From contig NC_042998.1 in the NCBI RefSeq assembly GCF_006345805.1, forward strand, positions 21,514,001-21,578,000: a stretch of DNA of 64,000 nucleotides, read 5' to 3'. This document shows positions 4,830 to 62,290 of this stretch, one piece after another. The position numbers and the translations under genes are program-made. A model generated the notes under the pieces. It ran no database searches and was not told the origin of the DNA. It was given only the letters and a program-made list of their open reading frames with translations. The stretch comes from Octopus sinensis (taxonomy: Eukaryota). Positions within the stretch are counted from its first letter, which is position 1. Each line of letters starts with the position of its first letter.

Positions 4830-4940
4830 ACAGAAAACCAGGAAATAAAATACTTGGGCTGTAGGATATGTGCAGCAATATATGTCACCTTTTGCTGCTT
4901 TTTTCCAACAGGCCTTGTTGCTTCTATTAAGTTATGTGAG
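4830..4940 (+). CDS. CD225/dispanin-family membrane protein G1, penultimate exon (intramembrane segment)
   Basis: Polypyrimidine tract + cag acceptor and gtaagt donor, 111 nt, phase 0: TENQEIKYLGCRICAAIYVTFCCFFPTGLVASIKLCE (CD225 CCxxPxG motif); paralogous to 28275-28382. Confidence 0.9.
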
Positions 4941-5003
4941 GTAAGTAAAATACGAACGTTTCTTGCAAGAATTTCTGTTCATTTGCATACCTTTTATCCA
5001 AAC

Positions 5004-5462
5004 GAGGCTGTGTGATAAGAAATTTGCTTACCAATCACACGGTTTTGGTTTCAGTTCTACCGCCGCACCTGGGATAAGTGATTTGTACAACAGCCAAGTG
5101 TTGATCAAAGCCATGTGAATGGATTAAGCAGAAGGAAACTGAAAGAACCCCGTCACACACACATACCTACACATATATACATATGAATATACGTGTATGT
5201 ATATGTGTGTATGTGTGTGTGTGTGTGTGCGTGTGTGTGTGTGTGGAAGAGAAAGAGAGTATCTATGTCTGTGTTAGTCAACTACCACCAGTTATAACCG
5301 ATGTTGGTGTGTTTACGTTCTCGTACTCTAGCGTTTCGGCACAAAGATGATAAACTAAGTGCCAGCCTTAAAAATAAAATATGTACACGTGTCGATCCGT
5401 TCAACTAAAATTCTTTAAGGCGATGCTCCAGCATGGCCATAGTCTGATGACTGAAACAAATA
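5004..5462 (+). mobile_element. tRNA-derived SINE family 2 (V-domain-like core with internal CA/TA microsatellite)
   Basis: aaagcc.tgtgaatggatt...gaaactgaaagaa core and 3' aaggcgatgctccagcatggcc; same family as 62711-63100. Confidence 0.8.
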
Positions 5463-6270
5463 CTATACACTGCAAAAGCCTTCGGCCAATTTCAATTATT
5501 GTAAATTACTATTAATTGCCAACCTATAAGGGGGTGTTTCGCATTGCGCTTTTTGCAGATGAAACATTGGCCTTAAACATTATATTTTGTAGTAGGGGTC
5601 TGAATGAGAGGGAAAGATGTGAGACGACCACCAAAAATGGCCAAGCAAAAGTCTACGGCCACCTCACCTAAACAAATCAAGATACAGTGTTTCAAAACAG
5701 AAAAATGTCTATAATGAACATTTATTATATAATGTTCTTTTCAAGATCTTTTGATATTTCGTATGGCTACTTCTCACCTTGAACCATTGCTTCAATGCAC
5801 TTAGGAAGAGATGAGTACAAATCCTTCACCATCTTCACAGGCATTTGATGTCATTCTCTGTGGCTGATCTCCCACAACACTTCAAGATTGAGTGGATTCT
5901 TCTGACAAACTCTTCTCTTTAGTTCTGTACACATTTGTTCGAAGATATTTAAGACAGGGCTCCAAGCTGGCCAATCTTTCAATATGGCAATACCTTTATC
6001 AGCCAGACTCTGTTATGTTGCACGCAATCTGTGGCATTGCGCACCGTAATGCTGAAAAATCTCACCTTCATTCAAGTCTTTTATAAAATTTCCTGCAGCA
6101 ACTATATGTATTTGGCACTTCCAGTTACCGTCAATTTTAACCACCTTTCTTGAACCATCACATTTTATGTGTCCCCAAAGCATCAGATTCTTACTCCCAA
6201 ACTTCACTGTTTTTGTCAAGTAACGTGGGTCGTTTTCCTTCCTGACAAACTCTGGCTTATTAAAAAGGGA
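5463..6270 (-). mobile_element. Tc1-type transposon fragment (3' half of transposase + terminal region)
   Basis: ORF 6013-6219 KTVKFGSKNLMLWG resembles the Tc1 TVKxGGGSVMVWG motif; paralogous copies at 28886-29290 and 51306-51730 lack the coding part. Confidence 0.75.
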
Positions 6271-7189
6271 AACGAATCATATATGTACAAGGTGATTGTC
6301 TATTCCTCATGCATAATCTGACCACCTCATACATACATATATAAATACACACATACATAGATACATACACACACACGCATACATACACTAATAACACACA
6401 CACACACAGATATATATACATATATATATATATATATATATATATATATATATATATATATATATAAATGTACATATAAGTAATCCCCCCATCCCCCCAA
6501 AAAACGAAGAAAAAGCACAAGAAGTAAAAACTGTGTTTAGATTACATTATCCAATGTGATATTATACAATGTTATTTTTTTAAAAGAGAATGTTGTGATT
6601 TGAGGAATTTGGCTACTCTTTCAAACAGTCTTATTTATTTCCTTGTGGTTGTGTCATAGACTGTTTGAGGTTCCCTCATGGCGTTGATACGCATTTAGTT
6701 GATGGAGATTATAGAGGAGAAGCATAATTAAAGGTCCTAAACAAGACCAAACGAACATCATGATTATAATAGTCGTGAAAATGGTTCTTATATTAAGGCT
6801 CACCTCTAATGCATGTTTGCTCCATTATGCCTAACAATAACCGTTTCAAGTATTCCAAATACAGCAGTCTTGTTTTAACTCATCATTAATATCTGCCAAC
6901 TCACCATATCATTGTAAATAAGGTTTCTATTAATCCAGTCTACATAAAATATCTTTAACCCCAATTGGCTAAGAAACAGCATAGCATTTAACAGCGTTGA
7001 TAAAACATCTGCTTTTAGAAGAGTAATGGTTATGAAACTGACGAAATATCACTTCACCACCCCCGGAACAACACACACATTACAAAAATATTGGTAGAAT
7101 TCGTGGTCACACCAGCTCCCCTCCATCCATTCCTTTATTTAGAAGAAATGCTACTGTTCATCCATATAATTCCATATAATTGCTACGAC

Positions 7190-59790: not shown

Positions 59791-61659
59791 CAGGATTCTC
59801 CACCAAAAACTTTTTTTGCCCATAAAAAATATTAGCGATGTTAAGATAAGAACCCTGCCGGATTATGTGCAGATTTCTACGTTTGTAACTGTATACTTCC
59901 AACTGGTCAAATCTGAAAACGTGGCATATATGAATAAATAAATACATTCGCAATTAAAACTTTAATAAAGTAAAATAAAATAAAAAGATATAAATATATA
60001 CAAATATATAAATGACATATAAATATACTAGCAGAAATACTCGGTGCTGCCCGGGTTAAGGAAAACAATGGATTTTTAAAACGCCATCTAGATTATGCAG
60101 GCCTCAGCTGCTAGTAACTGATATACCAACTTTCTACATTAACAACTCTCCAACCCATGCAAACATGGAACATAGACGTTAAGTGAAATGTTAAAAGTAA
60201 GTTTTCAACTTATATATGTATATAAAGTAAATACACGTAATTCAAGAACACATTTTGTGTAGCCTATTTCGTAAACGGAAAACAGGTACAGATTATAAAA
60301 AATGAAAGGCCGAATTTTGGTGATTCATTCGACAGAGGAAGTAGAAAGCCAATCCGATGATAAATCTAATCTTGAATCTTGAAATTGTAGTGTAATCTGC
60401 ATAATGAACTGCTGGATTATAACTGAAAGCTGCTTCATAAAAGTTACCTCTCTCAGCTGTTGCAACTGCTCTTCGTTCTGCAGTGGAGATCCTATTCCTT
60501 TTCAGCCGTTCATATCTCTGTTCATCGCTTTGAGATGCTGTGTCCTTTGTAATGGACAGTCTCTTCGTTTCTTGGTATGCTTCCTTTTATGTAGATGTCT
60601 CTCTTTCCTTGGACAGGGACATTCTTTTGGCTGACCTTGACATTTTCATTCTAGGGATGGTTATATACGTATAAAGAAATACACGGTTGCAGAAGACAGT
60701 AAACAGTGAAAATATTTGGGTAACGGAAATTATATTTCTTAATACGACGGGTAAAGCAAGAAACTTTTAAGGAAAATAAAAGATTCCACGGGTTGAAGCG
60801 AAATTTGTCATTCAACCAGGGCCAGTATCTAAGGAACTAGATAGACAGATATGGAGAGATAGACACAGATAGAGAGATATAGATAGATAGATAGATAGAT
60901 AGATAGATAGATAGATAGATAGATAGATAGATAGATAGATAGATAGATAGATAGATAGATAGATAGATAGATATTAACGTCACTGATGCTAGTATACCGG
61001 TAGTAAATATATTTTTAAAGTTTTCAAAGACGTGAATATAATTTAAAAAGTAATTTGTGTTCATCAGCAATGGATGTCAGGGTGACAATAAATTTCTGAA
61101 AGTTACTTCACAAAGATTTACCTCTGTTCTCTAAGTAACCAAGGAACAGGTGTTTTCTGCCACGGGAGGCCTATTACTTATTATGTGAAACATCTTAAGA
61201 GTCTAAATCAACCCATAGAACGTAAGTAATATATGTGCTCTCAAATTTAAAATCGTGAAATGATGTGCCGAGGAGCAAAATGAACGAATGAAAGTGTGAT
61301 CTTTGCATTTTTCATATCGATCTAATTCCGAAACGCGTCCACAGGTAATCAAATACCGAGTGAATTTCGTTGTTTTTTTCTCTCTGCCTACGTGAATTGT
61401 TTTGAGTATATGTTGTCCGGGAGTTTCTTCTTATAGTAGAAGGAATAGCTAAGTTCTTTGGCCGCTATTTCTAAAGTTCGGTATGTGGTGAAGCAAATTT
61501 TTTCCTGAACCCTAATTATAATTCTACACATAATTATTATATATATATATATATATATATATATATATATATATATATATATACAAATATACACACAGAA
61601 ACACACACACAGGCGTTCACTACATCAAACTTCATGCGATATAATAGCTGAACCTTGAA

Positions 61660-61978
61660 AATTATTTATTTATTTATGCACCCTTTTCAAGCCTAGCCAG
61701 GCTCACGGGCCCGGTTTCCCGGTTTCTATGACGTATGTGTTCCCCCCAGCTGGACGGGACGCCAGTCTATCGCAGCGTTACTTAAGAAACAGGAAGAAAG
61801 AGTGAGAGAAAGTTGGGGCGAAAGAGTACAACGGGGGTCACCCCCACACCCTGCTGGAGCCTCGTGGAGCTTTGGATGTTTTCGCTCAATAAACACACAC
61901 AATGCCCGGTCTGGGAATCAAAACCGCGATCCTCCGACCGCGAGCCCGCTGCCCTAACCACTGAGCCATTGCGCCTCC
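61660..61978 (-). mobile_element. tRNA-derived SINE family 4 inserted in the G4 proximal upstream region
   Basis: GGAGGCGCAATGGCTCAGTGGTTAGGGC...GTTTTGATTCCC head, (aaat)n tail; TSD gaacc(t/a)tgaa at 61650-61659 and 61979-61988. Confidence 0.88.
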
Positions 61979-62280
61979 GAACCATGAATATTCATAACGA
62001 AAAGGTAAGGATTGTAACTGTTGAATATACAGCTGTGTACTGCTATATGCTGCAAGGCAAGTATTTCACAAAGAAAACTGTTACACTCCATAAAGCAATT
62101 TTCAACTTTAGTGACGTAACCTGTCTCGTTGCTCATATAGTTACTACCAACACCGCCCTCAGTTTACACGGCTGAATAATAATACTACTGCGAACAAAGC
62201 GAGTAGAAACACGAATAATTTCGGATTTTAGCATTCCGGTCTTCTATCGCCAGCGGCACGAAGCAGCGGAGCTTCAAAAC

Positions 62281-62290
62281 ATGGAAGACA
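62281..62290 (+). CDS. CD225 paralog G4 coding exon 1 (ATG GAA GAC A); gene continues beyond the window
   Basis: aaaacATGG followed by gtaagt; upstream and intron-start sequence homologous to G2 and G3. Confidence 0.72.

Follow-up and report, generated by a model that had tools for sequence, protein, structure and literature searches.

From IFITM in defence against viruses to PRRT2 in synaptic release, SynDIG/PRRT1 in AMPA-receptor biology and TUSC5 in glucose transport, proteins with a CD225 domain govern membrane fusion and trafficking. Here we examine a 64,000-nucleotide (nt) stretch of Octopus sinensis DNA (about 21,514,001-21,578,000 of CM016860.1, assembly GCA_006345805.1), which we call the window and whose numbering we use for all coordinates unless another record is named. 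It contains four same-strand copies of a CD225/dispanin gene, two of them complete (G2 and G3) and two cut by the window ends (G1 and G4). Going by their sequences, these genes encode small two-helix CD225/dispanin membrane proteins, and the window is very likely part of an Octopus-lineage tandem cluster whose products would serve as membrane adaptors like others of the family.

Described dispanins have two hydrophobic helices that follow a long N-terminus and leave almost no C-terminal tail; their hallmarks are a C-C motif in helix 1, A-x6-A and G-D motifs in the loop, and a loop intron that splits the two helices (PMC3282796). Among the subfamilies, DSPA (IFITM) arose in vertebrates and has two exons, and DSPB (the PRRT2 group) is tetrapod-specific, also has two exons and carries a C-F-C motif. 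DSPC and DSPD1 (PRRT1) have an extra N-terminal exon, and it is subfamilies C and D that invertebrate dispanins resemble (PMC3282796). A GxxxG motif drives oligomerisation of both IFITM3 and PRRT2 (PMC7665892), and a catalogue for Aplysia lists ten IFITM-like genes (PMC9334734).

The four coding exons of G2 splice into an open frame of 203 amino acids (aa). A 10-nt coding part of exon 1 (18739..18748; ATGCAAGCCT followed by GTAAGT), in agreement with the start of the NCBI gene range, is joined to exon 2 (26373..26722), which encodes a cytosolic Pro/Tyr/Gln-rich N-terminal region with PPGY and PPAY motifs. Exon 3 (28275..28382) supplies the first hydrophobic helix, including FCCFPSGI, and exon 4 (30122..30265) supplies the loop (GNLEG and A-x6-A), the second transmembrane helix (TM2) and the stop codon. 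G3 likewise has four coding exons, which splice into a 229-aa open frame: the 10-nt coding part of exon 1 (41568..41577; ATGGAAGCCT then GTAAGT), a Pro-rich exon 2 (48770..49191), exon 3 (50694..50801), whose FCCFASGI has Ala in place of the family-invariant Pro, and exon 4 (52545..52694), with the GNLEG loop, a divergent TM2 containing Pro, and the stop codon. Within exon 2 of G3, an 18-nt (YPPLSE-type) unit is repeated in tandem at 48882-49092, and the exon exceeds that of G2 by 72 nt (4 units). Every intron of both genes is GT-AG, and all exons of the four copies lie on the + strand. Upstream of the G2 start codon, a promoter and 5' untranslated block (18430..18738, +) is conserved with G3 and G4, both in a three-way alignment and by blastn, and includes a TATATAG-like box ~150 nt before the ATG. 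An earlier note, made from the sequence alone, had proposed G2 and G3 as complete open frames in a same-strand tandem array of spliced CD225/dispanin genes with a Cys pair, a GxxxG motif (GNLEG) and a C-terminal transmembrane helix, and both the array and the exon coordinates hold.

The two partial copies extend this array in both directions. The exons of G1 within the window are exon 3 (4830..4940), which encodes the first hydrophobic helix with its FCC motif (TENQEIKYLGCRICAAIYVTFCCFFPTGLVASIKLCE) and is flanked by an AG acceptor and a GT donor, and exon 4 (7444..7590), with the GNLEG-containing loop, the second transmembrane helix and the stop codon. The intron upstream of G1 exon 3 can be aligned to G2 intron 2, and window base 1 corresponds to a point 68 nt beyond G2 exon 2, which places the Pro-rich exon and exon 1 of G1 just upstream of the window. 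At the other end, G4 is represented by its promoter block and first coding exon (61995..62290), the latter being the 10 nt at 62281-62290 (ATGGAAGACA then GTAAGT). The rest of the gene lies past the window end, and the G4 stretch matches the promoters of G2 and G3 at 73-75% identity over ~240-660 nt. A tblastn search of both strands found no CD225 exons in the window other than those of G1-G4. The earlier note had counted at least four copies; four are seen and more lie on the chromosome outside the window, but only two are complete within it. Two side observations concern the partial copies. Intron 2 of G1 (217-4187) exceeds its homologue in G2 (26953-27935) by ~3 kb and includes a long GTT/GCT-type triplet run at ~925-1150. 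Adjoining the G4 promoter block upstream, a candidate GC-rich tRNA-like element of the short interspersed type was picked out by eye at 61850-61980; ARAGORN found no tRNA in it, and tRNA and Rfam scans of the window returned no matches.

Family membership is carried by profile searches. Against the Pfam CD225 model (PF04505; curated gathering cut-off 27.1 bits), a search that the earlier note had put forward as a check on the spliced proteins, G2 scored 49.8 bits (E = 3.7e-13, residues 135-194), G3 scored 44.9 bits (E = 1.2e-11) and the part of G1 in the window scored 42.5 bits (E = 6.9e-11). CD225 is the only Pfam domain above cut-off in G2. A profile built from the C-terminal domains of G1-G3 drew in 1024 relatives at E <= 0.001 from 1.84 billion representative proteins. 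Within that set, the only relatives above 50% identity were those collapsing into G2's own sequence cluster, and the next-best profile matches were other Octopus CD225 paralogs on the same chromosome. The sole sequence match among solved structures was PRRT1/SynDIG4 (9zks chain M, E = 9e-7).

We also weighed the idea that the gene models are chance open frames within repetitive DNA. The Pro-rich exon is indeed of low complexity and in part an 18-nt tandem repeat. Against this stand three independent CD225 matches (E values of order 1e-11 to 1e-13), the exact identity of G2 to an NCBI protein, and intron positions conserved in at least eight paralogs across three species; together these rule chance frames out, leaving that explanation with practically no probability.

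The predicted proteins carry most of the dispanin hallmarks. Helix 1 of G1, G2 and G3 contains the C-C motif as FCC, and the A-x6-A of the loop corresponds to A169 and A176 of G2, which are invariant across paralogs. The loop intron is in phase 0 and falls between ...SAVK and AYKMAKNG in G2 and G3; G1 and every cluster member examined have it at the same place. All three proteins have GNLEG as their GxxxG motif, for which self-association is predicted. The Pro/Tyr/Gln-rich N-terminus bears two PPxY motifs, and the N-terminal regions of G2 and G3 are 18-24% Pro. Kyte-Doolittle analysis of G2 gives hydrophobic segments at residues 134-158 and 179-203 of 203; the N-terminus ahead of them is long and the C-terminal tail very short. 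The AlphaFold model of G2 has helices at 123-142, 145-162 and 166-202, with a block-mean predicted local distance difference test score of 69-96 from residue 121 onwards and a disordered N-terminus. The central Arg of the SNARE-like motif, present in PRRT1, is replaced by Tyr158 in G2 and G3 and by Ser in G1, which argues against the R-SNARE mimicry reported for IFITM3 and PRRT2.

The array in the window is one end, the distal part, of a larger cluster. O. sinensis has at least eight CD225 genes over ~0.57 Mb of CM016860.1, all on the + strand; 0.35 Mb of this span was left out of the scan, and the word-indexed homologue searches were lossy and missed known paralogs, so the member count is a lower bound. 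The members are LOC115232335, which has an acidic N-terminus (21.009-21.051 Mb), two CD225 exon sets within 21.29-21.36 Mb, an 'annexin A7-like' gene (21.361-21.388 Mb) and G1-G4 (21.514-21.578 Mb). Of the members checked, all but the LOC115232335 type have a 10-nt first coding exon (ATGGAAnnnn, but ATGCAAGCCT in G2) with a GTAAGT donor. The Pro-rich members have the conserved upstream block in common, and all members have the loop intron. This common promoter block, 10-nt exon and loop intron speak strongly for growth of the cluster by whole-unit tandem duplication.

Related clusters occur in other Octopus species. A syntenic cluster of at least five CD225 genes lies at 16.48-17.05 Mb of CM046602.1 in O. 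bimaculoides, and orthologs of two cluster genes, one of them named 'dispanin family', lie at 193.18 and 193.81 Mb of OX597815.1 in O. vulgaris. There is good evidence that part of the cluster's growth predates the split of these species. Other Octopus members, namely XP_029655251 and XP_036367721 (both 'annexin A7-like'), XP_014790937 (O. bimaculoides, 'PRRT1B-like') and CAI9718725 (O. vulgaris), resemble G2 in chromosome region and loop intron position. All but the LOC115232335 ('dispanin family') type also have its four-exon plan, 10-nt first coding exon and PPxY-bearing N-terminus. They are only 33-43% identical to G2 in the CD225 domain, and the GNLEG loop and a subgroup of their own belong to G1-G3. 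An independent expansion, as the earlier note had supposed, is thus likely to have taken place in the octopus lineage: the nearest matches of the window genes are Octopus paralogs on the same chromosome that have the 10-nt exon and the promoter block.

Three observations on the cluster stand apart from this. The segment 21,293,497-21,360,388 of CM016860.1 holds two complete CD225 exon sets ~35 kb apart (record positions 13566-17403 and 47162-56889), and in the protein XP_036367721 ('annexin A7-like X4') the Pro-rich exon comes from the first set and the CD225 exons from the second, so that it is either a read-through product or a chimera of two gene models. In the second set, two helix-1-like exons lie side by side (52578-52640 and 52693-52809 of the same record). 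In O. sinensis the LOC115232335-type and Pro-rich genes share a strand, whereas in O. vulgaris and O. bimaculoides they lie on opposite ones; one lineage has either an inversion or a faulty assembly here.

Compared with the described subfamilies, the octopus genes follow the C/D pattern, having four coding exons and a separate Pro-rich N-terminal exon (exon 2 in G2 and G3). With PRRT1/SynDIG4 (DSPD1) and SynDIG1/TMEM91 (DSPC) they share the CD225 domain, the conserved loop intron, a very short C-terminal tail and a long Pro-rich cytosolic N-terminus on its own exon (PMC3282796). They differ from PRRT1 in several respects: FCCFPSGI stands in place of the CCFWPTGI of vertebrate PRRT1 and of the PRRT1-like proteins of Lottia, Potamilus, Physella and Mercenaria; G-N takes the place of G-D in the loop; the position of the PRRT1 Arg holds Tyr or Ser; and they form a multi-copy tandem cluster, whereas PRRT1 is a single conserved gene with a link to AMPA receptors. 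PRRT2, TUSC5 (TRARG1) and TMEM233 (DSPB) resemble the octopus proteins in their Pro-rich N-terminus, CD225 domain and GxxxG motif, but carry C-F-C (PMC3282796) and the central Arg (PMC11730294), whereas the octopus proteins have C-C and lack that Arg.

PRRT1-like proteins with PPxY N-termini are found in Lottia, Potamilus, Sinanodonta, Mercenaria, Physella, Solemya and Dreissena. In a neighbour-joining tree of the 80-column CD225 domain (200 bootstraps), those of Lottia, Potamilus, Mercenaria and Physella joined a PRRT1 fragment in 118 of 200 replicates; G1-G3 grouped together in 127, and G2 with G3 in all 200. Other molluscs' PRRT1-like genes therefore group with vertebrate PRRT1 and not with the octopus cluster, albeit with weak bootstrap support, in the comparison across molluscs that the earlier note had suggested. 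Taken together, the exon pattern and the tree indicate CD225 members of PRRT1-like architecture that are neither demonstrable PRRT1 orthologs nor IFITMs. Orthology to PRRT1 is not demonstrable: G1-G3 lack CCFWPTGI and do not group with PRRT1 in a tree of low resolution. Orthology to IFITM (DSPA) is ruled out by the four coding exons and separate N-terminal exon, DSPA being vertebrate-specific (PMC3282796).

The resemblance to PRRT1 raises the alternative of a PRRT/SynDIG-type regulatory role in neuronal or secretory trafficking, in which these genes would encode receptor or channel auxiliary subunits or SNARE modulators multiplied in octopus. PRRT1/SynDIG4 is the best sequence match among solved structures, the Pro-rich N-terminus sits on a separate exon as in DSPC and DSPD1 (PMC3282796), and several cluster members are named 'PRRT1-like' in NCBI. 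However, other molluscs possess closer, CCFWPTGI-bearing PRRT1-like genes that group with PRRT1 as the octopus cluster does not, and rapid duplication and divergence are atypical of conserved synaptic auxiliary subunits. No cluster gene name appears in the supplements of the octopus brain cell atlas, a weak negative given that identifiers differ. We judge a role of this kind to be quite unlikely.

Divergence among the copies points to an array with a composite history. The duplicated unit spans ~21-23 kb and comprises the promoter, the 10-nt first coding exon, the Pro-rich exon, the helix-1 exon and the loop and TM2 exon. Identity between G2 and G3 is 91-97% over a stretch that begins at the end of intron 1, takes in exons 2-4 and runs on for ~9 kb downstream (26231-39836 versus 48629-61565), and 83-86% over the promoter and exon 1 (18155-18994 versus 40986-41820); G1 is ~82-88% identical to G2 or G3. 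The higher identity of the 3' two-thirds relative to the 5' part points to later homogenisation, by gene conversion or unequal crossing-over. The simplest reading that this suggests is an older array in which the 3' parts of G2 and G3 were recently homogenised, rather than one clean duplication; concerted evolution has likewise been proposed for the IFITM cluster (PMC3282796).

Exon 4 departs from this pattern. Between G2 and G3 it is 86.8% identical (30173-30265 versus 52596-52694), compared with 94-96% in the flanking introns, and the difference comprises 13 nonsynonymous changes and 1 synonymous change, all past codon 17. Amino-acid replacements outnumber what the intron rate would give (binomial P about 0.0015), although the ratio of nonsynonymous to synonymous changes alone is not significant (P about 0.14). 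Most changes at conserved sites fall on the G3 branch and not on G2 in an outgroup comparison, and a conserved Phe is replaced in G3. For exon 3, comparison of G3 with G2 gives a ratio of nonsynonymous to synonymous substitution rates (dN/dS) of about 0.15. The exon 4 pattern could stem from positive selection, from decay of the G3 copy or from a short gene-conversion tract donated by an unseen paralog.

How such proteins might act can be sketched by analogy with the family. Each would be a small protein with a cytosolic N-terminus rich in Pro, Tyr and Gln that is predicted to be disordered and bears PPxY motifs. The first hydrophobic helix, intramembrane or part of a hairpin, would have its Cys pair S-acylated, as it is palmitoylated in relatives; the N-terminus and short basic loop would face the cytosol, and the C-terminal transmembrane helix would be an anchor with almost no tail. 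GNLEG may mediate self-association as GxxxG does in IFITM3 and PRRT2, and the PPxY motifs may recruit Nedd4-type WW-domain ligases that govern the protein's own turnover and sorting. Embedded in the membrane, the CD225 domain could alter the trafficking or fusion of a host membrane or of partner membrane proteins. The most likely action, judging from relatives, would be that of a palmitoylated, oligomerising membrane adaptor.

Several observations weigh against the view of the window as a cluster of working, family-like adaptors. Support for expression consists of the NCBI model of G2 only, and a lossy search of 5.8 billion proteins found no G1-like or G3-like proteins and no O. vulgaris or O. 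bimaculoides orthologs of G2. G3 lacks the Pro of CCFPxG (window ~50766), which is invariant in 22 aligned relatives, and its TM2 has gained a Pro and lost hydropathy. The loop of G1-G3 has G-N (NGNLEG) instead of the G-D motif of dispanins; several other octopus paralogs retain G-D and others also have G-N, a conservative variant that leaves the profile match unaffected. A Foldseek search of the AlphaFold model against the PDB was uninformative, with nothing at E < 2.9, the helical hairpin being too simple and the N-terminus disordered. The tree recovered monophyly of all octopus cluster genes in only 9-16 of 200 bootstraps, at the low resolution of its 80 columns.

Part of this evidence bears on a narrower alternative, that at least one copy in the window (G3, G1 or both) is a non-functional duplicate that has kept an open frame, leaving G2 as the sole working gene. 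The public protein set matches G2 only, and the missing G1-like and G3-like proteins mean that some copies may be unannotated, untranscribed or pseudogenes. The loss of the invariant Pro and the conserved Phe from G3, its altered TM2 and the faster divergence of its exon 4 than of the flanking introns all fit decay. Yet neither the window part of G1 nor G3 has lost its open frame or any splice site, both pass the CD225 cut-off, exon 3 of G3 shows the low dN/dS given above, and absence from a database does not equal absence of expression. We take decay of one or both copies as a serious possibility, though one that is more probably wrong than right.

What the octopus locus and the vertebrate IFITM1-3 cluster (DSPA2) have in common is a tandem family cluster with signs of concerted evolution (PMC3282796), the Cys pair, GxxxG and an N-terminal PPxY. 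They are not orthologous, DSPA having arisen in vertebrates; the octopus genes have four coding exons against two and N-termini of 120-145 aa against about 57 aa, and octopus lacks an interferon system. In a crude scan of 1 kb upstream of G2, G3 and G4 we found no consensus interferon-stimulated response element, gamma-activated site or NF-kB site, with the proviso that cephalopod elements may differ; a promoter scan for the cAMP response element gave nothing conserved in these three genes.

The locus could nonetheless be read as an IFITM-like restriction cluster that blocks fusion of enveloped viruses at endosomal or plasma membranes and diversifies under pathogen pressure. The genes belong to the same superfamily and carry the CC, GxxxG and PPxY motifs that IFITM3 needs (PMC7665892, PMC11730294), and CD225 genes are candidate antiviral genes in Aplysia (PMC9334734). 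Recent tandem duplication with rising copy number, repeat-length variation in the N-terminus and the TM2 amino-acid excess between G2 and G3 are in keeping with this. Conversely, DSPA is vertebrate-specific with two exons (PMC3282796), R85, the Arg needed for the antiviral activity of IFITM3, is Tyr or Ser here, and the crude scan of 1 kb of promoter found none of the consensus sites sought. The changes at conserved G3 residues fit decay equally well, and the change ratio in exon 4 falls short of significance when taken alone. We regard an IFITM-like antiviral function as unlikely.

A related and still more speculative proposal is that the Pro-rich cluster of at least eight genes forms a cephalopod-specific, interferon-independent system of membrane-fusion restriction or defence, separate from the IFITMs and derived from a PRRT1-like ancestor. 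G1-G4 would then be its youngest and fastest-changing part, and the CD225 fold would have been recruited convergently into innate immunity. We give this proposal little credence. Fast duplication, repeat-length change and TM2 divergence make us lean slightly towards an environment-facing role. The family-like adaptor cluster remains our preferred account. As an independently expanded and partly concerted cephalopod set, it offers natural variants of the CD225 domain, some without the central SNARE-like Arg and one without the invariant Pro, that could show which features of the fold serve which activity. It could also show if invertebrates without interferon use the CD225 fold in defence.

Existing annotation has obscured much of the cluster. 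Spliced G2 is identical (100%, full length) to an NCBI Octopus sinensis protein named 'serine/threonine-protein kinase atg1-like'; the gene range agrees exactly, and the NCBI locus matches window 8739-40265 base for base. CD225 is also the sole precomputed domain of the 'annexin A7-like' proteins, and both the 'atg1-like' kinase and the 'annexin A7-like' names are artefacts of the Pro/Gln/Tyr-rich low-complexity N-terminus. G2 and several neighbours are modelled in NCBI and ENA, some under correct names and some not: one O. vulgaris member is called 'dispanin family', and others are called 'PRRT1-like' or, wrongly, 'annexin A7-like'. These wrong names and the apparent lack of G1 and G3 protein models mean that counts of the family in octopus are probably too low. 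The earlier note knew of no description of such a cluster: our literature search found no paper describing a cephalopod CD225 cluster, but G2 and several neighbours were already in public annotation. What the locus shows is a known family expanded in one lineage, and its wider interest would depend on proof of a role in defence.

Several repeats lie between the genes. Decayed fragments of a retrotransposon without long terminal repeats lie on the - strand at 36006-37229 and 57885-59713, at homologous positions downstream of G2 and G3 (RVT_1 match, E = 1e-15; the endonuclease match is weak). Common to both units, this element was inserted before G2 and G3 were homogenised. A Tc1/mariner-type transposase fragment (12595-13005, - strand; Pfam DDE_3, E = 3.7e-14) lies between G1 and G2. 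An (ACAT)n microsatellite of ~166 copies occupies 40076-40737, some 0.8-1.5 kb ahead of the first exon of G3. (TAGA)n arrays occur at 13923-14044, 39094-39293, 60838-60973 and 63707-63829, those starting at 39094 and 60838 being homologous in the G2 and G3 units.

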